Assembly: GCF_037042905.1 (NCBI RefSeq)
Contig: NC_087262.1
Span: 5,332,001 to 5,396,000 of the forward strand
Reading direction: 5' to 3'
From: Lytechinus pictus
Taxonomy: Eukaryota
DNA: 64,000 bases
The notes beneath the pieces were generated by a model. The model saw only the letters and a list, made by a program, of their open reading frames with translations. It was not told where the DNA came from and did no database searches. This document shows positions 30,235-64,000 of the stretch, in pieces. The position numbers and the translations under genes were made by a program. Position 1 is the stretch's first letter. Each line of letters opens with the position of its first letter.

Positions 30235-30277
<43 letters not shown>

Positions 30278-31672: not shown

Positions 31673-31916
31673 CACTTCAAAAAGTTTTAAACAATATTGG
31701 GTTAAAAGGAAACATGCATGTTTTTTGGGTGAAACAACGCCTGTTCATGTGGAAATTCTAACGAATTGTTGTGTAAATTTTACCCATGAACTGTCTTTTT
31801 TCACCTAACAAAAATGCTAATCAGCTTGCATGCATATTGAATTGGGATTGTTTTAACCGACAGTTTGTTGGTTTAAATTTAACCAACTTGGGATTGGTTA
31901 AACAATTTTGAGAGTG
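31673..31916. mobile_element. Degraded CACT MITE (1158 family)
   Basis: AATATTGGGTTAAAAGGAAACATG shared with 1158; TTTTGAGAGTG end. Confidence 0.55.
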
Positions 31917-32736: not shown

Positions 32737-33000
32737 CTGCTTTGTGGCCCAGTGGTTAGCCTCTGGACTTTGGAATCGTGGGTTGTGGGTTCAAATCCCA
32801 GCCATGGCGTGATTTCATTCAGCAAGAAATTGTTCCAAATTCATGAGGTAAAATGGTACCGACAGGATAAATTCTTTGAATGCGCCCAGCGCCTTTAGCA
32901 GCCGGAGCCAAAGCCAGGGAAATATGAATTGCGCAATTGAATAAGCAACTAGATAATCGGTGCATGCCTCATAAATGCAATAGGGCCTATACTATAATTA
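32737..33000 (+). mobile_element. tRNA-derived SINE
   Basis: TGGCCCAGTGG A box, GGTTCAAATCC B box, CAGCAAGAAATT core. Confidence 0.75.
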
Positions 33001-33471
33001 AGATAAAAATCAAGGTGTCAAAATAATATGAAAATAAGTGAAAACATTATAACCTCCACAAATCTAGAGCGATTTATTGACGCTATTTGATGTAAAGCAT
33101 GTACATGTATCTGTAAAAAAAGATGATGCTAGCTGCTATGCTTTGCGTTGGCATGCAAAGCATATCAACAGTAGTATTTGTTGTTCCATCTTAATAATTA
33201 TGACAAATTGTATTGTTCGATGTTCGAAGGGGGTCGTTTGAGCTTTTCGATGAATAGATGGGTAGCTAGGCATGACAGATATATTTCTATTATTATTTGA
33301 CGGAACAAGCATTCTTTGATCTTCTCAAACAAAGCTTGAATTTGATAAGTGCGGTCACACAAAAACCCAGTGTTGACGATAGTTCATGGTATCTTCATGG
33401 GGGCAACCTATAGATAACCAGGAGTTTATTTTTTTATATCACCCGTTCACTGCATGTATAGTATTGACTTA

Positions 33472-33664
33472 CCGCCCTTTCACACGGTAAAAAAAATCGT
33501 AATTTGAATGATGATTCCAGTGAAAAATAAGGCTAATGACGAATATTTAGCACGTGTGAAACCAAACTAGAACGTGATTAGAATCACGAACGCTAATCAC
33601 AGCCACGGTAACAATATCAGTCATCATTGCAATGATGAGTCAAGATTCACGTGTGAAAAGGCCC
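33472..33664 (+). mobile_element. Harbinger-like MITE (13843 family)
   Basis: TTA TSD on both sides; TIR GCCCTTTCACACG / CGTGTGAAAAGGC. Confidence 0.9.
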
Positions 33665-33770
33665 TTAATGTAGTGGCATCTCTTGATTAGTGCTAGAGTT
33701 GTAACAATAGTTATTCAAAAGAGGGTTATTTCAAAGGCTTGTTATTCGATTGATACTGCTTGTGCGCGTC

Positions 33771-34025
33771 ATCCTCTTGTCTTTCAAACAGAGGGACGAG
33801 GGTTCGAATCCCTACCGTGGTGTGTTTTCCTTCAGCAAGAAATTCGCATTGTATTGCACTCGACCCAGGTGAGGTAAATGGGTACCCGGTAGGATTGACT
33901 CTTTGAATGTACCGAGTACTGCCGACAAAGTGATAGCTCAGGATAAAGCTTGGTAAAATATATAATAGTTGCGTTCTGTATCCTCTGGCAAAAGCGCTAT
34001 ATAAATCAGCTATTATTATTATCAT
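33771..34025 (+). mobile_element. tRNA-derived SINE, 5'-truncated
   Basis: GGTTCGAATCC B box, GGGTACCCGGTAGG core, GCGCTATATAAAT...(ATT)n tail. Confidence 0.8.
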
Positions 34026-34489
34026 CTTATTAACGGTTATGTAGTGCATCGAGGTCTCCCGAGTGACTTCTTAATAACTTTGTACCTTTGTACGCATGAT
34101 CTAAGTAGTAGCATGTTCGCGAACTTCAGATTTACCTTATTTAACCCCCCCCCCTCGATCATCCCTATATACCTGAAAAATAATAATAAGAAGAAATCGT
34201 TTTTCTTCATGACTTATTTATTTTTCTGTAACAGCGTAAGGAGTGTTTGAATTATTAGCACAATACTTAAACAGCACTTAACAAAAGCACTCTCCAAAGC
34301 AAACATCTTTATCGGTAGATAGTATAATGCATGGCCCGGTGTGACGTAAATAGTTTATGCTATTCCCTGACCCATTTTGTACTTGGTTCGGTTCATGGAG
34401 GTTCTCCATACTTGTCTCGTAGCTCAAGACACAATATCGGACGTTGCTCCATTGGACGGCAATTGATGATGAGGCCCAGAAAGACACTG

Positions 34490-35040
34490 GTAGAGGAAAA
34501 ACATAGAATTGATCATCAGACAGAGAGAGCAGGAGAGAGAAAGAAAGATAACGAAGGAGAGTTGGGAGAAAGAACTATGGAAGAACAACAATCTAACAGT
34601 AGGAAGTAGATCCTTGAAGACCAAGAAGAAAAGAAATCAGTAAATTTTGATGAAGAAAATGATGCGGAAGAATAAAGTTCAGAAGAAGAGAAGAACAATG
34701 ATAAAAAAGAATAGAAGAAAAAGAACGAGTGGAAGGTGAAGAAGATGATTAAAAAGGATAAGAGGAAGAGGAAAATGATGATGAAGCAGAAAAGAAATAA
34801 GAAGAAAATGATGGGGGAAAAAAATAAGAAGAAGAGGGGAAGAAGGAGAAGCAAAAAAGAATAAAAAAGAAGAAAGGAAGGAAGAAGTAGTAGAGAAATA
34901 AGAAGGAAGAGAAGAACTTAGAATGTCGGAGTGAGAAGAAGGGAAATGAAAAAAAAAGAGGTATAAAGAGGGGGGACATACCGTCACGAAAAACAGGAGA
35001 AAATGACAAGAAAAGGGGCATTCTGGGATGGAGGACACAG
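34490..35040. repeat. GA-rich (polypurine) low-complexity tract
   Basis: Degenerate GAA/GGA repeats with frequent stop codons. Confidence 0.8.
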
Positions 35041-35557
35041 ACCGGCAGTGATGTATCTCGACAGATAGAGATTAAGAACTGAAATGAGGAATTGGTCGAA
35101 AATTATTACTGACAAGGAGTCCTCTGCATTGACCGTACCTTCGAAAGATGATTAATAAAGACAATGTTTTTCTCTCTTGTCCATCCACTCACCAGCGTCT
35201 CTCAAAGCATACCGACCGATGCATTGCGAAGAACTATTCTAGCCACATCAATCTCAACTTTATTAGCGATGCCCCAATTTTTCTTCCAACGTGCTCTGCT
35301 GTTTTGATGCACTTAAGAAACATCTCTAAAAGATAATGGAACTGCTCTAAGGAAAGAACTATGGTCAGATACAAACTGTATTATTGATATTGAAAATCAT
35401 AATGTGGAAAATAAGTTTACTATTTTTTCAATGTAGATTGTCATTACTTAATATTCAAATCTTCTTTCTGTGTAAGACGTGAAACTTGCGAAGGATTTAT
35501 CTTTTAAAAACGTCTTTCACTTTGCAAAATTAAGACTCAAAATCTGCTCTTTTGCAT

Positions 35558-35675
35558 ATGATACCAAGTATCAAAGCGCAGTTGAGTATATGCACATAGT
35601 AACCGCTATAGGTAAAATAAGACGTAATAAATAAATAAATAAAAAATAAAATATAAATGGACATGTTATTATTAT
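35558..35675 (+). mobile_element. SINE 3' tail fragment
   Basis: Near-exact reverse complement of about 4425-4493 (GATACCAAGTATCAAAGCGCAGTTGAGTATATGCACATAGTAAC). Confidence 0.75.
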
Positions 35676-36329
35676 TCGAATAATAAAAAAAAAATAATTC
35701 CCTTAGTCACTGTGATGTTAATCTCCTTGACTATTCAGAGTCAAACTAAGAATAATGTTGGAAATTCAACATTAACACGCTTAATATGAGAGAGATATTT
35801 ATAAAATTAGCGAAGTTACCTTATGAATAGTTTTTACAACGCTACGGGTTAATGCGTGTTCGTTTTTTTACATTAGAAGATCGTCTGTAATCTAGACAGT
35901 TGCTTTCCCGAAAGGGAAGACTGAACTTTTGATTTAAAGATGGGGAGCGTAGAGGGTGTGCATGTGACTCCAACTAATAGTCAGGATGTTGATGGGGCTT
36001 AATACGATACGGTTCGGTCGACAAGAAGCTCTCCAACTATTGATCTGTTATGGGGTTACAAGCCGGCTCGTCTTCTGGCTGAACAAGAGGCCATGTCGAA
36101 TGGGCACTTGGACACGCCTGTCGATTCGGGGATCGTAAAACGAGATGAGACGAACGAGAAATCGTTAAAGGTGCCCTACACTTTTTTTGCAGGACCATTG
36201 CAGGGTTGAAAGAGCCAGTGATGAACAAAATGGAGACAGTATGGGTGGAGCATTCGAGACGTAGATATCGAGAAGCATGTTTGAGAGATGGATGAGAGGG
36301 AGAGAGAGGTGTGGGCGATGGGTGTGGTG

Positions 36330-36646
36330 CACTGTTAGAAAAAAAAAACCCAGAAGATTTTACAGAAAGAAATAACCAAATCATTCTGTAAATTGTTATA
36401 ACAGGAAAGATTTTCTAAAAAATTTCTACAATTCTACAATTTTATACGGAACAGGTCTGTTATAAATATAGGCGAAAAAGTTTTATTACAATAAATTTAT
36501 AAGGTTACACACACCAAATAGCAATTTTCTTTAACTTTACATATATGCATGTAAGATTACACAGTGCAGTAAGATTACAGGTGTTCTCGAGACTCTGCTG
36601 CAGGAATTGTTTAGGGTTTTTTTTAAGTAGAACTTTTTTATCAGTG
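36330..36646. mobile_element. CACTG-ended MITE
   Basis: CACTGTTAGAAAA ... TTTTTATCAGTG, TG TSD, internal TTACAG repeats. Confidence 0.75.
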
Positions 36647-36866
36647 TGGCCAGACTCTGGGCAGATAGAGTGGGTGTGGGCGAGGGTGTGTATGTTTTGC
36701 GATTGTGAGATGATTTGACATGGTAGTGGCAGTGCCAAACAGAAAGAGTGAGATGAAGGAATAAGATACAAGATGTGAGAACTGAAAGACGATAACTACT
36801 GGGGGACGAAGTGATATGTCAAGAAAATGGGGGACGGGCAGGAGAGATGGGTCATCGAAAAGAGTG

Positions 36867-37266
36867 CACTGCAAACACTCCGGTGTTGATTTAACACCAG
36901 TCCGGAATCTATACACTATACACTAATTTAGCACTTACAGTGCTTGTATAGTGACTGCACTACGAGTGCTGATTTTCTAGTTTAAATTTGAACTAGAAAA
37001 TCAGCACTCGTAGTGCAGTCACTATACAAGCACTGCAAGTGCTAAATTAGCACTTCATTTCTTACAGTGAATATGTCCACACCAGAGAAGTATTGAAACA
37101 AAACCAGTTTGGAATCAAATCCATGCTGTTTTAATTATAATTGGTGTTGTATAAACACCTATCTGGTGTTAGACCGAGACCAAACTGGTGTAGTTTAAAA
37201 CTTCTCCGGTGTGGACATATATAGATTCCGGGCTGGTGTTAAATCAGCACCGGAGTTTTTGCAGTG
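36867..37266. mobile_element. CACTGCAAA-type MITE hosting a nested MITE
   Basis: CACTGCAAACACTCCGGTGTTGATTTAACACCAG / CTGGTGTTAAATCAGCACCGGAGTTTTTGCAGTG, TG TSD. Confidence 0.9.
36914..37069. mobile_element. Nested palindromic MITE of the 2770 family
   Basis: Near-perfect fold-back of about 60-bp arms, inserted in the TATA run of the host left arm; left TIR damaged. Confidence 0.85.
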
Positions 37267-38057
37267 TGGTAATGGTCAGATGAGACAGGGATTGGTAATG
37301 ATAAGAGGTAGCATAAAATTGAAACGTACCGCCAAGGTTTTTTTTTATTGGTGGATTGTTACAAGTCGGAAAGAACCTCATTTTGTTCGGATAGGTAGGT
37401 TTGGGTTGAAGTTTTATCTTCACACTTAACCTGTGAAATTATGTAGGCCTATATTTTGCGTTTGAATAATAACCATATGTAATTCGCTCTTCAAACGGAA
37501 CGAAACAAATTTAAAGGATATGATCTCTATATTTTTATTCTACCAAACACACAAAATGAACAATCGGGATATTTGACACTTCAGTGAGTAGTGAGTCGCA
37601 AACTGACAAAGAACATTTCTTCGTACTTGCAGAGGGTGATGTTGATAACTTTCGTATGATTGATGTACACCTGTAATGAACTATTGAAACGGTGCAGTGG
37701 ATTACACAGAATTGTCACAACATTATTAAATTGAATGCTGAGATAACATTTTTATTTATGTATTTTTATTTTCATTTTATTTTTTGCTTGCAGAGACTTT
37801 CCAAAGCTAAAAACGTTTATTTTATGTATGGCATTCCTTTCCTTCAATATGCATACAACTTAATAGCAAAATGAGAATAATGGCTGGTTTTCTGCCTAAA
37901 CGTTCCTCGCAAAGATTCGCCAGTCATTATTTTGATCCGTTTGGCGCTGGCTGTGCGTTGGCCAAATTTTATCGTAGAGAGTGGCACGAGCAAGAAATAT
38001 GCCATCCTATTGTATATTGCTTCTTATCTTCAAGGAATGACGGAGAATACTTCCATG

Positions 38058-41874: not shown

Positions 41875-44509
41875 CGGCCTCTCGAGCTCTAGGAGGAGTC
41901 AAATGTGGCTTTGGAAAGTCGTCCTCAATGAGATATATCGCTGTTACCATAGTAGCAACCAAAATTTTGCACACGAAACGCATATTGAATGTTTCCGTCG
42001 CAGATGCGAAACGAAAAAAAAATCTCATGTCACACAATTTGCATTGCTGGACGACCATGATGACGGGCCCAAAAAGTCTCTTCCAAAATCAACTAACGTC
42101 GTAAATAAGCGTGCGCGTCCTCAAACGAAAGGTCCGGATTGATCAAGTTTCAAACCTCATTCATCGGGTGAACGAACTCTGTATTGTGTTGGAGTGGAGT
42201 GGAGTCTTGAATGTCACCGATCACTCAGTCTTGCCGATTTTCGCATGGATAGAGTGGCTGTGAAAGACGATAAAACTCGACAGATATGTGCCTGTCTGTC
42301 AGTGAATGTATTGTAATGAGGAAAGTTTACCGGGAAGATTGGGGTTTGCGAAGTAGGTTATAAGCGTCAGGAATATTTCAGGTCTTCAACCCAATATCGC
42401 ATCATTCATTTTTGCTTGGAATGCATCTATTTCGTCATTCTCATCGTGTCCATCCGCATATTTTTCGCTCTTATTCTCTCTTTCAATTTCCACTGCACCC
42501 ATCACGTCTCACTCACTTCCCCCTCTCCTTTCTCTAATATGGTGTACAGGTGTTGGTACTCCATGGGTCTTTTCCTGTCCCCTTTGCCATCATCACATTT
42601 CCGCTATTACCCTCATTATGGGTCTGGAAGGCTTTTCATCTGACATGTTTTCAGATCCGACAACTTTCCCCAACTTGTGATTGGCTGAGAAACACGTTTC
42701 CTATGACAACCACTGTCGTATAATACATACTTTGTCGGATAAAGCACCCGACATTTCCTTTCACGAAATGCTCCTCAGGCCATTTTGCCATAGTTCTCCA
42801 TGCCCTTCAACCATTCTCCACGTCCACTTATAAGCTCATTACCTTCCCACATCTCCTTCTTCTGGTAATATTACATTGAAAATTTAGTTTTTTTATTTTA
42901 TTTTAAATTGTTTTGCCCTATCACCCTGATCACACCTTCAGCCACGAAAGAACTATCCAGGATTTGACATCTCATTTCAACGCAAAACTTTCATCACCTA
43001 GAGGCTACTCCCCAAAATCATGAATGAAAGGTCTCTATACCTATCAAAATAAGGCTTATCCTTATCCTCCTCAATATTATAACGAAAGCAAAAGTGGATG
43101 TAGTCACGTGACCTGTAACCTAAGTTAGGGTGTCCATCGTAATCCCATTAATGGTCGTCTTGTTGCGGGCTGCCTGTCTTGTCAAAGAGAGTGACTGCAT
43201 GTGTGGTCAGTTCACAACTTCTTTCCAAACCTCGACTCTTCTCCATCCTAGATCGTTGGTTGCTTCCTTGCCTGAAAATGCGACAGCTTTATGGACAAAT
43301 CAAAGGCTTAGCTCCGTCATTCACTGTCCATGTAATATTTGAGGAAAAAAAATCCTTTGTTGAACCAATTATAATTCTGGTAATGATGACAATTGTATCT
43401 TTGACATTTTATCTTGAATGGTGCGTCGATCGTTCAAACTTTGGCATTGAGGGTTGCAATTATTATTCTATATTTGGTAGATTGGCATGAAAACTTATTT
43501 CTCTAATTCTTTAGTAGGAAAGGAACGAGAAAATTGAATGTCAGTTGATGTTGCATTCTGATAATAAAAATCTCGACGGACCAAGTTAGAGTCTAGAATC
43601 GCAGAATACTGTAAAATTCAATATTTCTATTCGTTTTCCTTCACTCGGGCGAAACGACTGGAATGATGTAAACATGTCATATTATAGAACCTTATTCGGG
43701 GTGTTGTTGGCTTATGAAGCCAGCAAATTTCATTAATACATTTCCATCCAAAATCTGTTTTCTATTTCATTACGTATGAACTAGGTTAATGGTTGTGATC
43801 GACCCACCATACGGGGTATAAGTACAATACGATTGAGCGGGTTCTAAGATCCATTTGAAAGTTCATGGAAGTCATCGACCTCCGGAAGTGATCTCTCCAG
43901 ACGACCTTCCCCCTACCCACATACATACATACAAACATACACACACAAACATACAAACACTATTTGCAGATCAAGGATGTTTCAAATCTGAAGCAGTAAT
44001 ATTAAATCAGGTGTGTACTATTCGATTAAATTGGCGCATGTACATTTTGCTTTGTATCATATTTTAGACTATTTCACCGTATTCTTGAAAAATACTTCTT
44101 TATTTAAATAGGTACTAAATATGAAAGAAGACCCTTTCCTTATATAGTTGTCAGATGAGGTGAGGAAAAAGTGTAGTATTATACGATAATCGGTTTTTAG
44201 AGTTCTTATTATCTTGTAGTCAACAACTCAAAATGACACGCAATGTGACGGTAATACTACCCGTTTCACTCCTACACCTGTATATTTTTCCAGTATTTGA
44301 ACCGCAACCTCAGAAAATAGATAAAGGTACTGGTCACGAAAGGGGGTCAAGCCATGACGATATACCAACTCTTTAGGTCACACTTCCTATATTACCAGGT
44401 AGTGCGGTGTGGCATGCATTAGTAACGAATATTCCATATGGTGGGTGGTGATGATGAAGATATTATGGTCCGAATTAATCTAAGTTCGCTCTGTCACTCA
44501 TCGTTTACT

Positions 44510-45800
44510 CTCTGCATCTTGCCCTTCTCCCCTCTCCCTTCCCTTCCCTCCCATCTCCCTCTCTCTATCTGTCTATCTCGTCGCTCTCTTATAAGGGTTC
44601 TTTAATCCAGACAAGATGTGGACGTCCTGAAGATTGTCTTGGAGACTTAACCTGTCTTGAAGAATTTTGTGAATGTAATGGGTTGCCATATTTCACTTTC
44701 CCCCTCTCCTTTCTTCGCCTTCCTCCCCTCGCTACCCCCTTCTCGCAACCTCTCTCTTTGGTATGGTGTTTGGGCTGTAATCTTAGGAAGATGTGGACAT
44801 TGTCATCGTCAAGACATTAGAGTGATATCATGCAGATGATCGCAAATATAGATGTTGATATGAGACATTCACATTCTCTTTCTCTCTCACCAAACTTTTA
44901 TCGCCCTCCCCCTCCGTCTTTTTCTCTCATCTCTACGAATCTTCGCCCCCTTCCACCGTGTATGGGCTGTAACTAATTTTCAGAAGATTCGAACATCATG
45001 GAGACATTGGTTGTGATTGAAAAAACATGCGTAACTTGGACGCAAATAGCTGCTGATATTACATCAGTAACCTTCTTTACTCTTTCTTTTGAATGATTTC
45101 AACAATTTTTACATCCACCCCTCCCCTTCTCTCTCTCTTTCTTTCTCCCTATCCCTCCCCTCCATATCTTAAGCGATGTATGGTTTGTAATCGGTAAAAG
45201 ATGTGGAGATCATTAAGACTCTCCAGGGGTGATTGAAACAGCAGGCGCATTTAAAGTTTAATAACTGTTGGTATCAGTTCTCCTTAACGTCTTCTTTAAA
45301 ATGACCTAAAGGAATATTGTGCACAACTTTACCGCTCCATTCACATTATCCCATCTCCCTCTCTCTTCCCCAATGTCCCCCTGTCCTCCCCTCCGAATCT
45401 CACCCCTCTATTATTAATTTTCTCTATTACAGCAGTGTTTGGTGATTTGGCATGCATCTCTCTGGGTCTTTCTCCCTCTCCCATCTTCGCCTCGCTCGCT
45501 GCGCCTTCATTCTCAACCCTCGTCCCCCTCTCCCTCACTTCGTCCTTTTTTGAATGATCTGTAAAAATATTGTTCACACCTTTACCGTCCCTTCACATTT
45601 TCTCACTCTGCCCTCCTGTCCTCCCCTCCTAATCTCACCCTTCGTCCCCTCCCCTGTATTATCCCTTTTCTGTATTACAGCGGTGTCATGTTCTGTAATC
45701 TAAAGAAGATGTGGACATCGTGAAGACAGACGTCATGCAGTGATGATCGCAAATAGCTGTTGATATATGACTTCGTCTTAACGTCCTCTTTTTAATGATT
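44510..45800. repeat. Degenerate tandem array (units of about 175-250 bp) alternating CT-rich tracts with an AAGATGTGGA motif
   Basis: Motif copies at about 44613, 44789, 44984, 45199 and 45706, several followed by GATCGCAAATA / GACGCAAATAG. Confidence 0.65.
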
Positions 45801-47819
45801 TGTATGTTTTTTTTAACACCCTTCCCCTCTCCTCATCTCTGTTGTTAACATTCAGGCTCTTCCCTTTTGGATCTTTTTTTCTTTATTTTTTTTTACTCAC
45901 TGCATATCTTTTTTTTCCAGTCATATTTAGCTGTCTTTCTTTTCTCCCTTTCTTACCTCTTTCAACGTGGGTTTTCTTAAAAATTGCGAAGTATTATTAC
46001 GTATAATGGTGATCAATTAGAAAGGCATTACCACCTAGGAATCTGTGCAGATATTGTTAATTTTCAATTTAATCCTTTATTATTGCTTTAATTATTCGGT
46101 AATTTTTTATTTTCAACTTAGTTTCAAAGCATATATATACACTTTATTTCAAATGTAAATATATATGTGTTTTTTTAATGGAAGTTTAATTTACCAAGCA
46201 TTTTACTGCTTTGCAAAAAAATGAGGATAGGTTTAATCATTAAACTTGTAAGTTTATGAATTAAGAACCAATGATAGTAGTGGGCGAAGACTGGCGTAAT
46301 CATTAAACAATCATTCCATTAACTGAAATACACTTGAACATGTTCAAAATGCATTGAATCTGATGAGTGTGATAACGTTCTTATTTTAGTGTGACCAGTC
46401 CCATCCGTTCATTTTCTTGTAGTGTCTCATCAGATAAGATCTGCTGATCAATTAGTCCCATCTATACCCGTTGTTGTTATGCTGGTGGTTGATGGTGAAT
46501 GTTGATAAAACCATGGACCTATAACGATAGCACATCCCTTTAGATATACAGGTCTCCTTGTGGATCTACATGACGAAAGGTATTAACATATAATCACACA
46601 GAAAAATCTGACATTTTTATCAATGTCATGTGGGCTGATAATTAAAATACAATAACAAATCAGTAGAACAAAATCATTTCAAGAGGGCCCATCAAGTCAC
46701 CGTCAGTTCAGGGAATGAGGCCTCCATGATTATTGCACGTGATTTTGATTTGTAATTTTGTCAGTGCCATTCGCATAAAACATTTTACTATGACATTCTC
46801 AATCTACCACGATGCCATAGCACATGAAAACAAAAAAATAAATCTTTAGTTTAAAAAAGTTAAATTTCTCCTGTAAAAAGTTTTGTGCAACAGTAATCGG
46901 ATAATGCAATGTTTCAAATTTTGTGACACATTTTCAATCATATACGAAGACTATTGAGATTATGCTCATATTTCATTCATTTCATTTATGTACTTCATGT
47001 GTTGTTATGTCAAAAGTACTTCCTTTAAAATTTAACTTTAATAAGAGTATATCAAATTGCGAATGTTGGCTGATTTTTTTTTTTTCATTGTCATTGCGAT
47101 ACTTTATATTGTAAAATGGCATCCACATTCTATGTTATCTTGAAAAGTATCAAAATGTCTACATTTACGTTTTTGGTGTTTTGGCCAGTTATCAAAAGTA
47201 GTCGCTTTTGTAATTGTAATTGGAGACGATTGGATATCGATGTGACAAATGAAGTGAAAACAACCCAAAACGCCTTACATTTGTTAGAAGGATTAGCACT
47301 AGAAACTATGCCGTCATCTATTGTAATCGTTAATTAAGCTGATAGGAAATCAATATGAACAATTTGACTTAATCTCCGGGGTTAATCTACCAAACGCCGT
47401 GTACTGTAAAACCACACACAGTCATTCCGGTGGAACCGACCCGAGACTGACCAAAATTCATTACGCTATTTCCAATGGCATACCATTTGTCGATTTGGAG
47501 TCGGTATCATTGGTACGTCTGTAGCTGTAACACTGATATCGAATTAAGACTTGACAATGAACAAGTATCCGGTCAGCACCGAAGCCGTGACATCTGTTTT
47601 CCCCCTGGTACAACCTCGCTGAAAATAGAGTCGTAAAACCAGCGCTCTCAAATAAACCCAGTTTATGGTATCCTTAAATCAAACGAGGTTTATTGATGGA
47701 GGGAATTTGTGATAGGATGGGTAACACTGATTTGAAAATCAATTCATTTTCGAAATAATATTCCATCTGTGAAAAAGATTTGTGAAGATAACACGGTACT
47801 GCATCACTAAATCTGAACG

Positions 47820-53588: not shown

Positions 53589-54035
53589 TAAGTGTGATTT
53601 GGATAAAATGAATGAAAATTTATATAATTATTTGTTATCTTCCCCAAACGTATTCATTTGTATGAATTAGTTAAGCCGGTTGAAAAATTATATAATTGTT
53701 TGTGACCTTGTTAAGGCATATTCATTAGTGAAATTTGATAAACCGAATGAAAAATTATATTATCATCTGATACATTCTTCAAGCATAATCATTAGTGAAA
53801 TTAGATAAGCAGAATGAAAAATTATACAATTATTTGTTATCTTGTCCAAACATATTCATTAGTGTGAATTAATTATTAAAGCCGAATGAAAAATTCTATG
53901 AATGTTACCTTGTTAAATCATATTCATTGGTGAATTGGATAAACCAAATGAAAAATTATATTATTGTCTGATACCTTGTTAAAACATATTATTTGGTGTG
54001 AATTAGTCAAACCGAATGAAAAAAAATCTACAATT
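53589..54035. repeat. AT-rich minisatellite, about 66-68 bp, about 7 copies
   Basis: Recurrent ATATTCATTAGTG...GATAAACCGAATGAAAAATTATA. Confidence 0.8.
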
Positions 54036-54067
54036 GCTTAATTTTTCTTTTGCTTATATACTATCAG

Positions 54068-55682
54068 TGTGACTGCCTTCGTAAAACTTTCTACGAAGGA
54101 GTTTCGTCTACTTATGTCCAACTATTGTTATTCACAAGGCACAAGGAATCAATCAATGCTGGACTCGACTTGTTGAAATAAAACAAACTTTCGCTTTATT
54201 CAGTTAATCTCCAACACTGGTGACAAACTTCAGTCGTACTTTCAGTTATACTTATATGCACCTTCAGATAACAATCTGTAATGATAATGAATAAACAAAC
54301 AATAATAAACAAATGTTTCATCTTGAAATCATGTCAATTACTAAATCTAAGTTAGTACAACAATTACGATTACATATGATTAAATGAGAATTAATCTGAC
54401 ACTAATATAAGTGATCATCATACACTTGTACTATTATACCTTATAACATTAACCTAATTTAATAGAGTATAAAATATACAAGGAATAAAGTTAATCTATT
54501 GATTAAATCCTCGTATGAACACATCTACACTCACTTTGTGCTGTGCACTACTAAGTATTCTACCCAATAGATATTGGCCGGGTGAACATAACTACATGCC
54601 AACACAGTCATTCATTCAAGGTTTCTCCCTAAATCACTCCCAGAGGAAAGGTCTTTCTCTCCACGAAAGTTATGGTTTTGTTCTTAATAACAAATTGGCC
54701 ATGTACGAACAGTAATCTACATTATCACAAGTTAAACATGAAACTAAAGAAGTAACTCTTTAGAGATGATTAGAGTATAATAAGAAAACAAACTAGTAAT
54801 AGTTCCTACTATTACACTAACTCAGCTTATAACGAAACAGCATAACATTATTCTATCTTAAGATTAAAGTTAAACCAGATTAAAATACAAATGTGAACAA
54901 GCCCTGCATTTACAACGTGCAGTAACTTATCTACTCAAAAGAGAAAGTAAAAAGGGATGAATGTGAAAGGGGCCACATTCCAAAGTAGTCATTCATAGAC
55001 CCTGCTTCTACTGGATTAGCAAAAACAGACTCTCTTTGTTTCCCAATGAAACTAGACTTCTTGCTTTATGTATAATTACACCCAACTAATTCATTGTATT
55101 TAAAAGCCTTTTACATCTTAGCACTTCTAGATGGAAATGTATTATACAAGAACAATATTATGAGATCTATCAACATCAGTATATTCACCTATTCCTCAAA
55201 TATACTAAACTGTACAACAAAGAAATCAACTTTCCTACACTATGCAATATACGTATTACACTCTGTTAACACAAACACATAATCTTCTCTAACTAAAAAC
55301 ATTCAAAACTATCTTAAATAGTAATATGAATTCTACAATATATTTACCATGTTAAATATCAAAACAATATTATATGAAATATGTTCTTACCGAATTGGGC
55401 CTTTGTAGTTGTCCACAAATAACAATTTACTTGAACTTTCTGCAACTGATTGTGAGTAGTACTTTACTCCATCACTCTGACTATGAGAATGAAAGTTATC
55501 TTTACTTCCAAGAAGATATTCTTGGAGAGAAGTTGGAGAACAATGAAATTACTCTACTATTAGCGGTGAGTCACACCTTCTGGGGAAACATATACCTCTT
55601 TGGTGGTATAGTCTTGATAATCAGACTCTTGATGAAGATTGGATGAGAGAATATAACATCACTACACACTGCTGTAGTGACA
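54068..55682 (-). repeat. 3' LTR (relative to the ORF)
   Basis: Same sequence as 61752-63366 at offset 7684 wherever checked; AATAAA on the minus strand at 54195-54200. Confidence 0.97.
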
Positions 55683-55945
55683 TGGCTCCTTTAAATGTAC
55701 CTACATTTACTAAATTAGCTTCAATTATTACGAATATAAAGTACAACAAATTATACCACATCATAATACAAATTAATCTTAAACAATACTTTGACCAATA
55801 ATATACCCAATGGATACATACACACAATGCAACCTTTAAAACAGCATTCTAGCCTTTAGAATTATCACTGAACCATACATGAAAAGAAAAACAACAATTT
55901 AAACGCATCATTTATATCATCGTTAAATGAAAATGTAAAAGATAA

Positions 55946-56016
55946 TGGCTCTTTGAGGGGGAAAGCTCCGAGTCTTTCGCGAGACAAATGGGATACTTCC
56001 ACTTTACTACTGTGGA
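55946..56016 (-). pseudogene. Degenerate full-length tRNA-Asp(GTC)-derived sequence with encoded CCA in the element 3' UTR
   Basis: TCCACAGTAGTAAAGTGGAAGTATCCCATTTGTCTCGCGAAAGACTCGGAGCTTTCCCCCTCAAAGAGCCA aligns end to end (about 52 of 76 columns by hand) with canonical animal tRNA-Asp recalled from memory. The acceptor stem and B box are broken. Confidence 0.75.
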
Positions 56017-56032: not shown

Positions 56033-59000
56033 TTACTGTTGATTGGGTAACAGAAGAACTAACTTGTTTACTGGTCTGTCGAATTTAGTTGGTGGGCTCT
56101 GGCGTTTGCCATTATTATCTAACTGTCCATCAGCCATTAGAAGTTTTACCTTCCTAATTCTACCATCGGCACTAGGATAGACATCTATCACCCTAGCTAA
56201 GGGCCACTTGTATCGTCCTCCCTCCTCTTCTTTGGAGATTACAATATCACCTATCGTTAAGTCTTTTTCTGTACTTGTCCATTTTCTACGCTCTTGCAGT
56301 CCCTGCAAATATTCTTTCCTCCATCGTAGCCAGAACTCATTGGCGAGGTGTTGGACGCGTCTCCACCACTTCCTAGAGTACACATCTTCGCGCTGGAAGA
56401 CTCCTGGTGGGGGTAATATGACTTTGGGCTTGGCAGTCAAGATATGATGAGGGGTCAGTGGTTCTGGTGCTTCACTGTCACTTAGATTGGTTGTCGTCAA
56501 TGGCCTGGAGTTGATTATGGCTTCTGCTTCGGTCATGAAGGTTCTGAAGGCCTCATCATCAAGTTGACTCCCAGATGATTTCAGCAATGGCTCTAGTGCA
56601 CGTCGCACTGACTGAATCTGCCTCTCCCAAACTCCACCCATATGAGAGGCATGGGGCACATTCATCTTGAATGGTATCCAGTCACATCCATTCTCAAGCA
56701 GGTACTCTTGTACCTTTCCCTGGTCCATTTCAGACAGCGCTTCCTTCAACTCGTTTCTGGCTCCAATGAATGCTGTACCCTGGTCAGAGCGTAGATGCCT
56801 TACAGCACCCCGTCGATTCATGAAACGCCGCAACGCGTTGATGAAGGCACTGCTACTAAGACTGTTAGCAGTTTCCAGGTGTACACTTCTTGAAGACAGA
56901 CATGTGAAGAGCGCACCATATCTCTTGACTTCACTCCGTCTTTCCTTGATAAGAAAGGGTCCAAAATAGTCCACTGCACAATACGAGAATGGTGGAGAAG
57001 GCTCAACTCTTTCTTCTGGAAGATCTGCCATCTTTTGTTGGAGGGGCTGTCCTCGCAATCGTCGACATGTCACACAGGACGAGATGCATTGTGAAACTGC
57101 AGACACTCCTCCTATCACCCAGTATCCTCTCTGACGTAGCTCATTATGAGTAATGCCTCTACCACTATGTTGGGTCCTGTGATGAGCATCTCGGATCAGC
57201 AGTGTTGTGACATGACTCTTACGAGGAATAATCACTGGATGTCTAATGTTACTGGACAAATTGGCGCGATGTATCCGGCCGCCGACTCGAATCACCCCGT
57301 CATCATCTAGAAACGGGTCCAATCTGAAGAGGGCACTGGTTTTCTTCAGTGCCGCATTTCGAGTAGGTACTTCATGTCTACTCATTTCTCCTGTCTTATC
57401 TAGTTCTTTAAGAATCTGCAGCTCCTGCGGGAAGTTTTCTTGTTGTAAACCTCTAATGATGACCTTCTCAGCTTCCTGCAGCTCACTCACTGTCACAACC
57501 TTAGGGATCGTTGCTTCCACTGATCTAGAACTCGTTCTGGTATGCTGGTTAGCCCTTTTCTTCAGACTCGTCTTCAGCTGTATACATCTGGCTACTGCCT
57601 TCTTGGCAGAGTGCCAACTGGAGAAGCAATTCAAACGGTTGGATTCAAATTGCCCTGTACTGACCTTGGTAGTTGCTTCTGTTCTCAGGACTGAGGCATG
57701 CTTCACCTCTGGGTCGTGGTCATCTACCGTACATGGATCATCTCCTGGGGGTGCAAACAAACCATCATTCCACAGGAAATCTGGGCCTCGAAACCAGCAG
57801 TGGCTAGAAGTGAGCTCCTTTGATGAGATTCCTCGAGAAGCTCCATCAGCAGGATTCTCCTTGGTATCAACATAGTACCATGCATCAGGGTCAGTCTGCT
57901 CTCGGATTGTCTGAACTCTGTTGGCAACGAAGATATGAAACCGCCTGGCTTCATTTTTTATGTATCCAAGAACAACCTTACTGTCTGTCCAGAAGAACTC
58001 CTTCACAGAATCGTATTCCAGTTCCGACTTCAGGAATGTGCTGCTCTTGGCTGACAATGTTGCTGCTGTTAGCTCCAGTCTTGGAATGGTAATTGGTCTC
58101 AATGGAGTAACTCGGGCCTTTCCGATTACGAATGAACAATGCACTTTGTCATCCTCATTGATGAGACGGAGATATGAACATTGCCCATACCCATCCTGAC
58201 TGGCATCAGAGAAATGGTGGACTTCTACCTGCTTGACCTTGCCGAACCTACTTGGTTTGTAGCATCTCTTGAGTTGGAGGTCACCTAGATGCTGGAGATC
58301 AAGCAGCCATTTCTCCCATTCTGAACGCTGTTCATCGGTCATAGATTCGTCCCAGTCCATGTTCTGCTTGCACATAGCTTGGAGAATCCTCTTGCCTTTA
58401 AGAACTACTGGACCAAGAAAGCCGCTTGGATCATAGATTGAACTGATCGTTGAGAGAACACCTCGTCTGGAGAATGAGTTTGCCTTCACCTGCCCTCTGA
58501 AGTTGAAGGTGTCATTCTCAATGTTCCAGGACACTCCTAGAACTCTTTCCAGCACAAGCTTGTCGACATCTAAATCCAGGTCTTGCAGGCTTTTTGCTCG
58601 TTCATCTGCTGGAAAGCTTTTCAGAACTTCTCTGCTGTTAGACACAATCTTGTGCAATTTCAGTCCTGATTTTGCACAGATTGCTTGACTGTTTTTCAGC
58701 AGCTGCACAGCCTCTTCCGCAGTAGGTCGTGAACTAAGACCGTCATCTACGTAGAAGTCTCTACGAATGAACTCTGCTGCACTTGAACCGAACTCTTCTT
58801 CACCATCTGTTGCAGCCCTTCTCAGTCCAAAGTTACTGCATCCTGGAGAACTAGCTGCTCCGAAGAGATGAACCTTCATCCGGTATTCAACAGCTTCCTT
58901 TGTTTCGTCACCGCCTTCATACCACAGGAACCGCAGCAAGTTCCGGTCTTCTTCATTTACGTAGAACTGAAGGAACATTCCTTTCACATCAGCCATGAAG

Positions 59001-61642
59001 GCAACTTCTTCCTTTCGGAATCGGCACAGAACACCAAGTAGTCCATTCATCAGGTCAGGACCTTGCAGAAGATGATCATTCAAGGATACACCTTCAAATT
59101 TTGCTGAACAGTCGAATACAACACGAATCTTGTCAGGCTTGTGTGGATGGTACACCCCTGTGTGCGGAATATAGTTTACTCTGCCATCTCGAACCTTCAA
59201 GCAGTCATCTGGTACTCGTTCTGCGTAGTTGGTGATTACATCATCCATGAAGGCCTTGTAGTCCTCCAGAAACTTCTGGTTCTTCCTAAATCTTGCAGAT
59301 AGCTGTCTCCATCTTTTAACAGCAAGAATCTTGTTGTCAGGAAAGGTCACATGATCAGACTTCAAAGGCAAGGGCATTTGGTAGTGTCCATCACTTCTCT
59401 TGCGGATTCCATTCTCAAAGATTGCCATGAATCTTGCTTCTTTCACTGAAAGTGGCGCTCCTTTCGGACTTGTCATTTGGAAGTCTTGTTCCAAGATCTT
59501 CAGTACAGACTCTGGTGTAAACACTTCCTTCGCTTGGCTTGAGTGCACCAGGTGGGGATATCCTTCACTTGTCTGAATCCTGTTACAGACGGCATCATCA
59601 CTTTGAGAACTTTGACATACTCTGCCGACGACGCCCCATCCGAGTGAGGTTTTCATCGCATACGGGTCGTCTTCTGCACCAGCGAGTACTTCTCGGGGTC
59701 GAATTGCTCTAGGACAGTTGTTTCCTATGAGCAAGGAAACCTTAATTGACGGGTTGTATGGCATCAACTCATCTGCGATTGGTGCTAGATGCCTCCATTT
59801 CCTCAGAACTTCTGCCTTGGGAATTTGTGACCGCTTGGCCGGAACCTCTTGTCTGGTGTAGCAGGACGGGAGTTGGACAACTGTAGACTTCTGGAAGTCC
59901 AAGACCTCGAGACCACTAATCTTTTGACAGCTAATGCGAGCACTCTCGTGCATTGTTGTCAGCAAAAGATCAGTCTCAGGTCCTTTAACACCCATTCTGT
60001 GGCAAAGACCACTGGAGACAAATCCAACGTTGGACTGGTCGTCGAGGATCGCATATTCCAGGAATTCCCTCGATGGATCATCAGCTTGCCTCACCCAAAC
60101 CGGCACAATCATACAATGGTCCTTTCCATCTTGGTCAGGAAGATCGCAGATGTTGGTACAGTTTGAGCTAGCCGATGATTTTTCTATCTTCTGTCGGTGT
60201 AGGCATGTCAAGTGGTTTCCCTTACACCTTTTACATTCCCGGCGTTGCTTGCAGTCCTTCCCAAGGTGGTTGCTACTTTGGCCACATCCCATACACAGAT
60301 ACTTCTTGAAGAAGAACGTCTTCTTATCCTTGTAGTAGATCTGCTTGAACTCTGGGCAGTCGTCGATGTGATGGTCCTTATCACAGTAAGGACATGATGA
60401 ATACTCCTTTCCATGTGCGGCTGTTGTAGACAGTGACCGACCTTGAAAGGTCTTCCCTTTCGGAGGTGCTGACTTTACTTTCGCCTCGTCTAACCTGGTG
60501 TATTCCAACTCTGGAATATTGGCCACTTCTGCTGCACTGGTGACGAAGTCTACAAATCTGGCAAAGGTAGGGTAACTGCCATATCCACATCGCTGCCACT
60601 TGGTCACCTCGTCTCTCCATTTGCGTTCAAGGTAGAATGGAACCTTCCTCAACAGCTTGACGTTCTCCTGCGGATAATCGAGAATGCCAAGGGAATCAAC
60701 AGTCACCTTGGCAACGCTGACCTGCTGGAGAAAGTCCGCAAATGACCGCAATCCACTTGGATCCCGATCTGAGATTCTCGGCCACGTGTTTAACTTCTTC
60801 ATGAATGCTGATGAAACTACACTGGTGTTGCCATACCTGCTGGCGAGAGACTCCCTTGCTTTCAGGTAAGCTTCATCGGTGCCAAGAAGAAGATAATGCT
60901 CCACGACCTTCTTTGGTTCACCAGTAACATATGTATGCAACATATGAAGCTTGGTTGCGGCATCTAGAGGCTTGGAGTCAACGAAACTTGAAAATGCATT
61001 TCTCCAGAGGGGATATCGTAATGGGTCACCATTAAATACCGGAACATCCACCTTTGGTAACTGACTGGCTGCCAATACTTGTTGACTAGTCGCATTTTGA
61101 TTCAGCATCATGTTGGCTACCTTGGCAAGTGACTCAACCACGTTTTCCATTCCTGGTGAAGCGTTGGTTGGTTCATGCTTCACTTCACTCAGAGTGGCTG
61201 GAACTGGTGGGGCTTGGGTCTGGATCTTGCCCTCATCCGTCGATTGAGATTCAAAGAATCTTTGAACAGACTCCTCCTTCGTCTCCTCTGGCAACTTGAT
61301 ACTGGTGTTTGAGAGCTCATCTTCTGATTCTGCAAGTTCGGCTAATTTCTGCTGATGTTCTTTCTGCAGCTTCAACCGTTTCAGCTCCATCTGGGCTCTC
61401 TCCAGTTGCATTGCATGTTCATGCTCCCTTTGCAGAATCTTTATGTTGTCCTCTTTGTCCATAACATCAAGTTCAGCCTGAAAGGCCTTGATAAGCATCT
61501 CGCTTTTGGCTGATTTTCTGCTTGCTAGACTCCTAGCTGGTTTTGGATACTTATCCATCATTTCTGGCAGCGAAGAGGACGTCCTCTGAAGATCTACACG
61601 TGTAGCCTCGCTGACTAGATTTTTTCCATCTATGTTGGCCAT
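56033..61642 (-). CDS. BEL/Pao Gag-Pol polyprotein (1869 aa from the first ATG; frame open to at least 61729)
   Basis: Gag LPKVDVPVFNGDP; three Zn knuckles (CPYC..H..C, CMGC..H..C, CKRC..H..H); protease ILDDQS; RT FYVDDG; RNase H HFSDAS / LELTAA / WTDS; integrase HHCC plus VDYFGPF / SDQG / WERQI; C-terminal FWLRWRKEYL; no env. Confidence 0.97.
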   Translation of the reverse strand: MANIDGKNLVSEATRVDLQRTSSSLPEMMDKYPKPARSLASRKSAKSEMLIKAFQAELDVMDKEDNIKILQREHEHAMQLERAQMELKRLKLQKEHQQKLAELAESEDELSNTSIKLPEETKEESVQRFFESQSTDEGKIQTQAPPVPATLSEVKHEPTNASPGMENVVESLAKVANMMLNQNATSQQVLAASQLPKVDVPVFNGDPLRYPLWRNAFSSFVDSKPLDAATKLHMLHTYVTGEPKKVVEHYLLLGTDEAYLKARESLASRYGNTSVVSSAFMKKLNTWPRISDRDPSGLRSFADFLQQVSVAKVTVDSLGILDYPQENVKLLRKVPFYLERKWRDEVTKWQRCGYGSYPTFARFVDFVTSAAEVANIPELEYTRLDEAKVKSAPPKGKTFQGRSLSTTAAHGKEYSSCPYCDKDHHIDDCPEFKQIYYKDKKTFFFKKYLCMGCGQSSNHLGKDCKQRRECKRCKGNHLTCLHRQKIEKSSASSNCTNICDLPDQDGKDHCMIVPVWVRQADDPSREFLEYAILDDQSNVGFVSSGLCHRMGVKGPETDLLLTTMHESARISCQKISGLEVLDFQKSTVVQLPSCYTRQEVPAKRSQIPKAEVLRKWRHLAPIADELMPYNPSIKVSLLIGNNCPRAIRPREVLAGAEDDPYAMKTSLGWGVVGRVCQSSQSDDAVCNRIQTSEGYPHLVHSSQAKEVFTPESVLKILEQDFQMTSPKGAPLSVKEARFMAIFENGIRKRSDGHYQMPLPLKSDHVTFPDNKILAVKRWRQLSARFRKNQKFLEDYKAFMDDVITNYAERVPDDCLKVRDGRVNYIPHTGVYHPHKPDKIRVVFDCSAKFEGVSLNDHLLQGPDLMNGLLGVLCRFRKEEVAFMADVKGMFLQFYVNEEDRNLLRFLWYEGGDETKEAVEYRMKVHLFGAASSPGCSNFGLRRAATDGEEEFGSSAAEFIRRDFYVDDGLSSRPTAEEAVQLLKNSQAICAKSGLKLHKIVSNSREVLKSFPADERAKSLQDLDLDVDKLVLERVLGVSWNIENDTFNFRGQVKANSFSRRGVLSTISSIYDPSGFLGPVVLKGKRILQAMCKQNMDWDESMTDEQRSEWEKWLLDLQHLGDLQLKRCYKPSRFGKVKQVEVHHFSDASQDGYGQCSYLRLINEDDKVHCSFVIGKARVTPLRPITIPRLELTAATLSAKSSTFLKSELEYDSVKEFFWTDSKVVLGYIKNEARRFHIFVANRVQTIREQTDPDAWYYVDTKENPADGASRGISSKELTSSHCWFRGPDFLWNDGLFAPPGDDPCTVDDHDPEVKHASVLRTEATTKVSTGQFESNRLNCFSSWHSAKKAVARCIQLKTSLKKRANQHTRTSSRSVEATIPKVVTVSELQEAEKVIIRGLQQENFPQELQILKELDKTGEMSRHEVPTRNAALKKTSALFRLDPFLDDDGVIRVGGRIHRANLSSNIRHPVIIPRKSHVTTLLIRDAHHRTQHSGRGITHNELRQRGYWVIGGVSAVSQCISSCVTCRRLRGQPLQQKMADLPEERVEPSPPFSYCAVDYFGPFLIKERRSEVKRYGALFTCLSSRSVHLETANSLSSSAFINALRRFMNRRGAVRHLRSDQGTAFIGARNELKEALSEMDQGKVQEYLLENGCDWIPFKMNVPHASHMGGVWERQIQSVRRALEPLLKSSGSQLDDEAFRTFMTEAEAIINSRPLTTTNLSDSEAPEPLTPHHILTAKPKVILPPPGVFQREDVYSRKWWRRVQHLANEFWLRWRKEYLQGLQERRKWTSTEKDLTIGDIVISKEEEGGRYKWPLARVIDVYPSADGRIRKVKLLMADGQLDNNGKRQSPPTKFDRPVNKLVLLLPNQQ

Positions 61643-61739
61643 GATGAAAAACTTTTGGGCAGTAAAGTTCCAAGTAGTATGTTTGGATGATTCCAGAACT
61701 TTCTGAACGTGATCCTGACTGGACGACACAAGTTGTCCG

Positions 61740-61751
61740 TTCGATTGTTAT
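61740..61751 (-). promoter_or_regulatory. Non-tRNA primer-binding-site position (ATAACAATCGAA)
   Basis: Abuts the 5' LTR, lacks TGG, and is complementary to the predicted LTR splice junction. Confidence 0.55.
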
Positions 61752-63366
61752 TGTGACTGCCTTCGTAAAACTTTCTACGAAGGAGTTTCGTCTACTTATG
61801 TCCAACTATTGTTATTCACAAGGCACAAGGAATCAATCAATGCTGGACTCGACTTGTTGAAATAAAACAAACTTTCGCTTTATTCAGTTAATCTCCAACA
61901 CTGGTGACAAACTTCAGTCGTACTTTCAGTTATACTTATATGCACCTTCAGATAACAATCTGTAATGATAATGAATAAACAAACAATAATAAACAAATGT
62001 TTCATCTTGAAATCATGTCAATTACTAAATCTAAGTTAGTACAACAATTACGATTACATATGATTAAATGAGAATTAATCTGACACTAATATAAGTGATC
62101 ATCATACACTTGTACTATTATACCTTATAACATTAACCTAATTTAATAGAGTATAAAATATACAAGGAATAAAGTTAATCTATTGATTAAATCCTCGTAT
62201 GAACACATCTACACTCACTTTGTGCTGTGCACTACTAAGTATTCTACCCAATAGATATTGGCCGGGTGAACATAACTACATGCCAACACAGTCATTCATT
62301 CAAGGTTTCTCCCTAAATCACTCCCAGAGGAAAGGTCTTTCTCTCCACGAAAGTTATGGTTTTGTTCTTAATAACAAATTGGCCATGTACGAACAGTAAT
62401 CTACATTATCACAAGTTAAACATGAAACTAAAGAAGTAACTCTTTAGAGATGATTAGAGTATAATAAGAAAACAAACTAGTAATAGTTCCTACTATTACA
62501 CTAACTCAGCTTATAACGAAACAGCATAACATTATTCTATCTTAAGATTAAAGTTAAACCAGATTAAAATACAAATGTGAACAAGCCCTGCATTTACAAC
62601 GTGCAGTAACTTATCTACTCAAAAGAGAAAGTAAAAAGGGATGAATGTGAAAGGGGCCACATTCCAAAGTAGTCATTCATAGACCCTGCTTCTACTGGAT
62701 TAGCAAAAACAGACTCTCTTTGTTTCCCAATGAAACTAGACTTCTTGCTTTATGTATAATTACACCCAACTAATTCATTGTATTTAAAAGCCTTTTACAT
62801 CTTAGCACTTCTAGATGGAAATGTATTATACAAGAACAATATTATGAGATCTATCAACATCAGTATATTCACCTATTCCTCAAATATACTAAACTGTACA
62901 ACAAAGAAATCAACTTTCCTACACTATGCAATATACGTATTACACTCTGTTAACACAAACACATAATCTTCTCTAACTAAAAACATTCAAAACTATCTTA
63001 AATAGTAATATGAATTCTACAATATATTTACCATGTTAAATATCAAAACAATATTATATGAAATATGTTCTTACCGAATTGGGCCTTTGTAGTTGTCCAC
63101 AAATAACAATTTACTTGAACTTTCTGCAACTGATTGTGAGTAGTACTTTACTCCATCACTCTGACTATGAGAATGAAAGTTATCTTTACTTCCAAGAAGA
63201 TATTCTTGGAGAGAAGTTGGAGAACAATGAAATTACTCTACTATTAGCGGTGAGTCACACCTTCTGGGGAAACATATACCTCTTTGGTGGTATAGTCTTG
63301 ATAATCAGACTCTTGATGAAGATTGGATGAGAGAATATAACATCACTACACACTGCTGTAGTGACA
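61752..63366 (-). repeat. 5' LTR (relative to the ORF)
   Basis: TGTCACTAC ... GCAGTCACA on the minus strand; 1615 bp. Confidence 0.97.
61960..63074 (-). other. Predicted spliceosomal intron inside the LTR (1115 nt; also 54276-55390)
   Basis: Donor CG|GTAAGA, acceptor TTTGTTTATTCATTATCATTACAG|, U-rich interior; the exonic remainder of the LTR is 500 bp. Confidence 0.6.
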
Positions 63367-64000
63367 ATCAGGTTGCGATTTTAAAAGGGTACATTTAAGG
63401 AAATGACAATTTTTTACTTGTAAAGTATGTAATCAAATTCTTTGGGGGATTTTATGCATGATTGAATGATTTGCTCATCTAATCGAAATAGATTAACTGA
63501 TACACGTTAAAATTAAAATGTTAGAGCACCATGAAAGGGCCAAGGTGTGACCACATATTGAAGTGTTCGATGATTGGTTGATCTTATCGTGCTATAGATT
63601 TTTCAACAAAAAAAGTGTTGATATGTCTATAACATTTTTTAATGTGGTAAATCCTCGTAGCGAGTTGTGCCTTCACACAACATGAAACTGATATCCGTGT
63701 CCAATTAATATTTGATAAGTTGTATTGTAATAAATATAAAATCTTTAGATTTTTTTTTACTTTTGGTATATTCTTGTTTTGTAAGGTTATTTCATACTTC
63801 TATTGGAAGGTGGTTATGGATTTAGAATTTCATTTTTGTTGACTCTTTAGTCGAAGAAAAGTGGGCCTATAGTGAAAGTGGAACATGAAGAACTGCGTGA
63901 ACTTTTTAGAAAATAGTGACACGATATCGAGGTCTTAGACCGTATGTGACACTTATCGTGCGGGGTAGGGCTAATTGGAATAGTGATACCGGTTCTCGGC

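Follow-up and report, generated by a model that had tools for sequence, protein, structure and literature searches.

What is a copy of a whole tRNA, in sense orientation and with its CCA, doing behind the pol region of a retrotransposon? The window that we analysed, a 64-kb stretch of Lytechinus pictus DNA, carries such a copy on its minus strand at 55946..56016. Read from 56016 to 55946, these 71 nt begin with TCCACAGTAGTAAAGTGG and end with CAAAGAGCCA, and their first base is the 17th past the TAA stop codon (56035-56033) of a gag-pol open reading frame (ORF) of 1898 codons. The original prediction of an end-to-end, sense-strand copy of tRNA-Asp(GTC), CCA included, in the 3' UTR of a BEL/Pao element was borne out. 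A global alignment with human tRNA-Asp, our reference for all alignments, which may differ from sea-urchin tRNA-Asp, runs colinearly from T1 to A76 (tRNA positions 1-76), with 52 of 70 aligned bases identical and six gap columns. Nine of the 18 substitutions are G>A, two are C>T, one is T>C and six are others, in agreement with an earlier count by hand (18 in all, 9 G>A, 1 T>C). The local alignment score of 28 compares with 12.6 ± 1.9 (maximum 23) in 2000 dinucleotide shuffles (z ~8) and with 10-19 for three other tRNAs on the same 71-mer, which is the top tRNA-Asp site on both strands of the whole window. Duplex energies separate the copy equally well: tRNA-Asp and the plus strand pair with -89.4 kcal/mol, shuffled controls with -40.8 ± 4.8 kcal/mol and other tRNAs with -37 to -50 kcal/mol. 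Like a processed tRNA, the segment starts at tRNA position 1 and ends in a non-templated CCA, features that mark it as a reverse-transcribed copy of mature tRNA-Asp inside the BEL/Pao 3' UTR.

The copy no longer behaves as a tRNA. ARAGORN found no tRNA genes in the window or in 26 related loci, and Rfam model RF00005 gave no tRNA match in the window or in the same 26 loci, either at the gathering threshold or at E<=10. The fold energy of the 71-mer, -12.2 kcal/mol, is no better than that of shuffled sequences (z -0.43). The Pol III B box (GGTTCGANTCC) is destroyed, the window having GGAGCTTTCC there, and three to four T-loop nucleotides are missing. The cloverleaf is thus broken, as had been claimed, and two of the hairpins said to stand in its place, TCCAC/GTGGA and GTCT/AGAC, are both present in the minimum free energy structure. 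Failed cloverleaf models and the destroyed B box together rule out a functional tRNA gene or a tRNA-shaped RNA. The suggestion of a tRNA-like processing signal is not supported either, no tRNA-type fold having been found by ARAGORN, by Rfam or in the fold energy. A 3'-terminal tRNA-like structure is ruled out too, by the missing tRNA-like fold and by the 263 nt, U3 and R that follow downstream.

The element that carries the copy lies on the minus strand between two LTRs of 1615 bp, the 5' LTR at 61752..63366 and the 3' LTR (TGTCAC...GTCACA) at 54068..55682. The two are 100% identical, and both open with TGT and close with ACA. A 5-bp target-site duplication, CTGAT, is found at 63367..63371 and at 54063-54067. 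The gag-pol ORF (56033..61729, minus strand) contains Peptidase_A17, DUF1759, DUF5641 and an integrase zinc domain, with a Pfam match to Peptidase_A17, the Pao protease, at 2e-46. Its annotated homologue has 1869 aa, so the ATG is likely near 61642, and the nearest protein, at 99% identity, is from L. pictus. A Pao-type polyprotein between LTRs and a short target duplication place the element in BEL/Pao, and the identical LTRs and 5-bp duplication show that it is intact, young and recently inserted. From the tRNA-like copy to the 3' LTR extends an AT-rich spacer of 263 nt (55683..55945, minus strand), a region that is unalignable between families and varies in length from ~50 to 600 nt. In the host flank just past the 3' LTR (53599-54009) there is also an AT-rich tandem array of at least five units of 67-68 nt, 65-84% alike.

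One origin proposed for the copy was read-through from a minus-strand primer, with tRNA-Asp as the primer at the primer-binding site (PBS), and nothing beyond the presence of a tRNA copy speaks for it. The PBS directly after the 5' LTR is ATAACAATC (61743..61751, minus strand). It is not complementary to a tRNA 3' end and is the exact complement of GATTGTTAT inside the LTR (61952..61960, minus strand), a site that is set in the conserved sequence CAGATTGTTATCT, 209 nt short of the LTR end. The arrangement recurs: 8-9 nt after the 5' LTR exactly complement an LTR-internal site 125-290 nt upstream, in a CAG/TCAG context, in the window and in related loci L002-L008, L010, L038, L061 and L063. Five PBS/site pairs covary: ATAACAATC / GATTGTTAT in the window (61751-61743 and 61960-61952), GTAAAAACT / AGTTTTTAC, GTAGAAACT / AGTTTCTAC, GTTAAACT / AGTTTAAC and GTAAAACT / AGTTTTAC. 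This complementarity has the look of Tf1-type self-priming, here in a BEL/Pao clade; that the LTR site would be the 5' end of the transcript, and so the self-primer, we infer only from its CAG/TCAG context. The ICTV profile gives BEL/Pao elements an 18-nt PBS complementary to the 3' end of tRNA-Arg or tRNA-Gly (PMC8742986). Neither such a site nor any other TGG-type PBS occurs in the window, L001-L008 or L010, and the sense strands of the related loci, 525 kb in all, contain no tRNA-Asp PBS (TGGCTCCCC). Read-through from a minus-strand primer would moreover leave an antisense copy beside the 5' LTR, so a sense copy after pol is wrong in both orientation and position. We consider a read-through fossil scarcely credible. 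A canonical tRNA PBS for the 71-mer itself is ruled out, the segment being in sense orientation and after pol, with the real PBS being ATAACAATC.

A second simple explanation is neutral, lineage-specific capture of a tRNA cDNA, a one-off fossil with no role. Within the window's family, the 71-mer is present in all five copies that we fetched (four from L. pictus, one from L. variegatus). Its middle is variable: the L001 copy differs at 7 of 71 positions, mainly at CpG, and the L. variegatus copy (L089:8126-8196), with its first 25 nt unchanged, ends in CCG, the other four ending in CCA. Pairwise differences within the family, 0-9.9% in the 71-mer vs 0.4-11% in the spacer, are inconsistent and carry no conclusion on constraint. 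This variability and the broken cloverleaf agree with neutral capture, probably the right account of the 5' two-thirds of the copy. It fails for the 3' third, which is coupled to a motif at the LTR junction (see below) and is kept across families that are 53-72% identical in amino acid sequence and come from several phyla, while the flanking UTR is unalignable. Divergence of this order in pol excludes the sampled loci being recent horizontal copies of one element. For the segment as a whole, neutral capture is therefore very improbable.

The evidence for conservation comes from relatives chosen by protein identity or similarity only, with the motif ignored. They comprise genomic loci from L. 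pictus (three more copies and one to two further families), L. variegatus, S. purpuratus, Diadema, Patiria, Penaeus and Actinostola, and 80 further metagenome loci found with an alignment of the pol C-terminus; in collapsed metagenome contigs, LTR ends were placed by analogy with two-LTR loci. The 3' end could be read in 71 families, and 66 of these have both a tRNA-Asp-like module at the end of pol (hereafter the upstream module) and a related tail at the LTR junction. The hosts are urchins, starfish, shrimp and an anemone, to which ~55 distinct metagenome forms are added. A typical upstream module reads AGACCGGGG-loop-CCCCG(A/T/C)CGAGGAGCC and corresponds to tRNA-Asp positions ~44-75: the T-stem is kept, the T-loop is shortened and variable, and the acceptor 3' strand and GCC[A] follow. 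In the window this conserved core, a remnant T-arm, acceptor 3' strand and GCCA (GACTCGGAGCTTTCCCCCTCAAAGAGCCA), occupies 55946..55975 on the minus strand. Its alignment with 39 other families shows the columns TCCC and AGCC to be invariant and (C)(G/A)AGGAGCC nearly so. Position 69 is A in the upstream module of 36 of the 40 families and G at the junction, and only 24 of the 40 retain the module's final A, 40% of modules ending in T. The position of the module relative to the ORF differs among 56 distinct forms: 25 have it within the ORF, 16 beyond the stop codon and 15 astride it, and it occurs in various frames, which places the constraint on nucleotides and not on a peptide. Absence from sister families, the outcome that the original prediction had set against any conserved role, is not what we found, since the 3' third is kept in sister and distant families alike. 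By these alignments the 3' third of the 71-mer is a cis-module kept across a large BEL/Pao clade, and the 71-mer of the window is the long form of a tRNA-Asp 3'-end mimic that belongs to a broad animal clade of these elements.

Long forms are not confined to the window's family. In L062, a distant family, the tRNA-Asp-like copy is almost full-length and scores 79 in the alignment (the window's family scores 50). Both long forms start close to tRNA position 1, the pattern that run-off on a mature tRNA would leave. Urchin families L002-L004 hold progressively shorter remnants of a tRNA-Asp copy. Short tandem duplications ending in GAGCCA occur in L008, L073, L033, L027 and L080; in Actinostola (L008:9572-9758) the module sits within a 45-nt unit present in four tandem copies inside the end of pol. 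Some long local alignments that reach into pol were counted as score inflation, caused by the codons for KLVLL (AAGTTAGTATTGTTG) at the pol C-terminus, ~30-60 nt before the stop codon (e.g. in L026, L020 and L037), which resemble the tRNA-Asp D arm GTTAGTATAGTGG. This likeness may be chance, or may provide microhomology for the return of the reverse transcriptase from tRNA to genome.

The end of the tRNA recurs at the LTR junction. GGAGCCA is found twice in the element of the window, at the end of the 71-mer and within TTTAAAGGAGCCA, which abuts the first base of the 3' LTR. The last 9 nt before that LTR, AAGGAGCCA (55683..55691, minus strand), stand in the position of the plus-strand primer, the polypurine tract (PPT), and equal tRNA-Asp G68-A76 except that bases 68 and 69 are A instead of G. 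Among 52 junction forms, 31 have the tail GGGGAGCCA, which equals G68-A76 itself, that is, five acceptor-strand nucleotides, the discriminator base and CCA. The usual layout is (A)GGGGAGCCA followed directly by TGT of the LTR, and apart from 2 of 54 forms the deviants are G>A only (AAGGAGCCA in urchins). The PPT position is thus occupied by AAAGGAG plus CCA here, and by AGGGGAG plus CCA in most families, directly before the LTR TGT. A hairpin, TAAATGT-AGGT-ACATTTA (55692..55709, minus strand), lies immediately 5' of the tail. Since MAFFT sets the covarying stems in different registers, RNAalifold reported no structure for the junction alignment, and stems were scored by a per-sequence search with shuffled controls. 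Of 54 distinct junctions, 52 have a stem of at least 6 bp that ends 8-10 nt before the LTR, and the stems comprise 32 different sequences. Every stem position varies yet stays paired, and the tail is left unpaired. With the cut-off raised to 7 bp, stems are seen in 83% of junctions vs 10% of shuffled controls. The 3' arm of the hairpin, before the tail, is T-rich, so that arm and tail resemble a U-box plus PPT. The junction is where a plus-strand primer must end, and the last 9 nt of tRNA-Asp, as the alignments have it, recur exactly there. A further hairpin at the LTR start, CACTACA-GCAGTG-TGTAGTG (55660..55679, minus strand), has compensatory changes in Diadema (CACTGCA/TGCAGTG). It has 7-9 bp and is limited to an echinoderm-containing subclade (L002-L006, L009-L014); as a clade-wide feature it was rejected, stems of at least 6 bp occurring in 37% of cases vs 18% of controls overall.

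Families that have lost the junction CCA tell how the two sites relate. There are five, with AGGGGAGGTA, AGGGAAGCAG (two families), GGAGGGGGAA and AGGGGGGAG before TGT, and the upstream module is missing in all five as well. In a quick, unrooted tree of 330 aa they fall at four places inside CCA-bearing groups. Judged by this joint loss, the upstream module and the junction CCA are coupled. L064 and L082 are sisters of the CCA-bearing L069 and L071 and share their LTR start, which implies that CCA was changed to CAG in place; L064 retains a decayed module. At the same site close CCA-less relatives have an ordinary purine tract (AGGGAAGCAG, AGGGGAGGTA or AGGGGGGAG, each followed by TGT), from which it appears that priming by a PPT in cis works at this site.

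The reading that we prefer, at a probability of about 0.45 as the sequence data stand, is a plus-strand primer module derived from tRNA-Asp and renewed by template switching onto packaged tRNA-Asp. The genomic RNA ending in ...GGAGCCA would be this clade's equivalent of the PPT, descended from, or fused with, the 3' end of tRNA-Asp. RNase H would spare the ...GGAGCCA RNA on the minus-strand DNA, and the reverse transcriptase would extend it into U3. Because this primer is identical to the tRNA-Asp 3' end, minus-strand DNA could switch onto the tRNA: the nascent strand would anneal to packaged tRNA-Asp, be extended to the 5' end of the tRNA and then return to the genome. Events of this kind would have made the upstream module, and full-length copies at least twice, once in the urchin families that include the window's and once in L062. 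The upstream module might then serve as a second primer-type copy (compare the cPPT, or PPT2 of Ty1) or as a partner of the junction tail, and the 5' two-thirds of the window copy probably have no function of their own. Template switching would account for a sense copy that starts at tRNA position 1, includes the CCA and lies upstream of U3. It would also explain why long forms recur in two lineages far apart, and why there are short duplications that end in GAGCCA. We rank a primer in cis first because homologous CCA-less junctions remain in use. Against it, a purine run of only 7 nt with CCA behind it makes an unusual RNase-H-resistant tract, and the two modules are not identical (A vs G at position 69). 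A plain PPT also leaves unexplained the invariant CCA in 66 families, the hairpin that exposes exactly the 9 shared nucleotides and the joint loss at four places in the tree.

Those three observations follow naturally from the main rival, in our judgement an unlikely one, in which host tRNA-Asp itself primes the plus strand; the docking of a tRNA on minus-strand cDNA that the original prediction had suggested survives in this form. The GCCA end and five acceptor nucleotides of the tRNA would anneal to TGGCTCCCC on minus-strand DNA, and the reverse transcriptase would extend A76 into U3. The annealing site would be held open beside the hairpin, and the upstream module would be a second, longer docking site for the same tRNA. 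The 9-nt identity G68-A76 includes the post-transcriptional CCA and sets A76 against the first LTR base. The junction CCA is invariant, with variation limited to G>A, which keeps rG-dT wobble pairing; the hairpin restricts the unpaired stretch to exactly the 9 shared nucleotides; and joint loss of CCA and module is expected if one trans factor serves both. The full-length copies show that tRNA-Asp reaches the reverse transcription complex, the shortened and variable part of the module is the T-loop, which in the mature tRNA includes bases that pair poorly, and the duplex with the window copy is strong, as given above. On the other side, sister lineages with CAG or a plain purine tract stayed intact, so that a genome-encoded primer suffices there. 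The G>A and wobble argument fits a constraint on a purine tract, or the G>A bias usual in retroelements, equally well. The 40% of upstream modules that end in T mismatch A76, and many families have non-wobble changes at positions 64-66. We also know of no precedent for tRNA-primed plus strands, and count this against the idea. Combined with a PBS that pairs with the LTR, priming by the tRNA would amount to swapped primers: the minus strand self-primed by the transcript 5' end, the plus strand primed by the last 9 nt of tRNA-Asp at the U3 border, and the upstream module docking the same tRNA. We hold this combined scheme to be similarly improbable.

More doubtful still is that both modules are protein-binding sites on the genomic RNA, serving as a signal for nucleocapsid or packaging, or drawing in by mimicry a host factor that binds tRNA-Asp, their position at U3 being secondary. 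A hairpin followed by unpaired (G/A)GGAGCC is common to both modules, conservation is at the nucleotide level regardless of reading frame, and both features are lost together. Nucleocapsid classically binds exposed GGAG, and a mimic of part of tRNA-Lys3 is present in the HIV-1 genome. Protein binding leaves unexplained the exact match between tail end and LTR boundary that every family shows, and the choice of tRNA-Asp in particular.

The primer arrangement that we favour resembles known systems in parts. As in HIV-1 (PPT and cPPT) and Ty1 (PPT1 and PPT2), T's and then a purine-rich stretch stand upstream of U3 and a second copy lies further upstream. Unlike those PPTs, the tract here ends in CCA, equals the 3' end of tRNA-Asp and forms a 9-nt tail after a covarying hairpin. 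The PPT pairs of HIV and Ty1 are identical, whereas the copies here differ at one position and the upstream one carries a T-arm-like hairpin. At the PBS, the likeness is to self-priming in Tf1 and sushi elements: the PBS complements an LTR site ~125-290 nt upstream at an initiator-like CAG/TCAG, with compensatory changes. The difference is that this occurs in BEL/Pao and concerns the minus strand, not the tRNA-like segment. The tRNA-like element near the HIV-1 PBS is likewise a sense mimic, in the genome, of part of a host tRNA; that element, at the 5' end, mimics the anticodon arm of the virus's own minus-strand primer, whereas here the T-arm and acceptor 3' end are mimicked, at the 3' end of the element and in a clade that shows no tRNA-type PBS. 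The tRNA-like structures of plant RNA viruses and of the Mauriceville plasmid transcript also tie a CCA-ending tRNA-like sequence to the start of replication, but they stand at the extreme RNA 3' end and fold like a tRNA, while the present copy is internal and has no tRNA fold. Hepadnaviral DR1 and DR2 offer no more than an analogy for the pair of short direct repeats, GGAGCC[A], on either side of the region upstream of the plus-strand start, and there is no sign here of primer translocation. Retrotransposons with tRNA-derived sequence include Helenus TRIMs and tRNA-derived SINEs, which use their tRNA part, in the LTR or at the 5' end, as a Pol III promoter (PMC10886601). Unlike in the non-autonomous Helenus and TRIMp3, where it is in the LTR, the copy here is internal to an autonomous element and its B box is destroyed.

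BEL/Pao replication is poorly understood and has been assumed to follow the retroviral scheme (PMC8742986). Our results suggest a clade, in at least Cnidaria, Arthropoda and Echinodermata, that departs from this scheme at both primer sites. In a literature search we found no description of a tRNA-Asp-like PPT or of self-priming in BEL/Pao; Repbase Reports and many subscription journals lay outside that search, and an earlier description may exist. The clade raises a testable question, whether a tRNA, or a mimic of its 3' end, can start second-strand synthesis, and urchins suit a priming test because their genomic tail AAGGAGCCA should differ from the tRNA's GGGGAGCCA. Annotation could use three markers: GGGGAGCCA directly before TGT, the upstream module and a PBS complementary to a site in the LTR. 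Tools that seek a tRNA-type PBS and plain PPTs would miss such elements or set their bounds wrongly.

Elsewhere in the window, a second tRNA-Asp match at ~34040-34070 on the minus strand, GTCACTCGGGAGACC, agrees with the anticodon stem at 14 of 15 positions. We rejected it, as ~0.3 such matches are expected by chance and nothing tRNA-like surrounds it. At 30000-38000 and 44000-46000, GC and AT are strongly skewed, reaching +0.19 and -0.25, which suggests further strand-biased features, such as other repeats or genes. Positions 47825 and 48217 each carry a 71-nt repeat.
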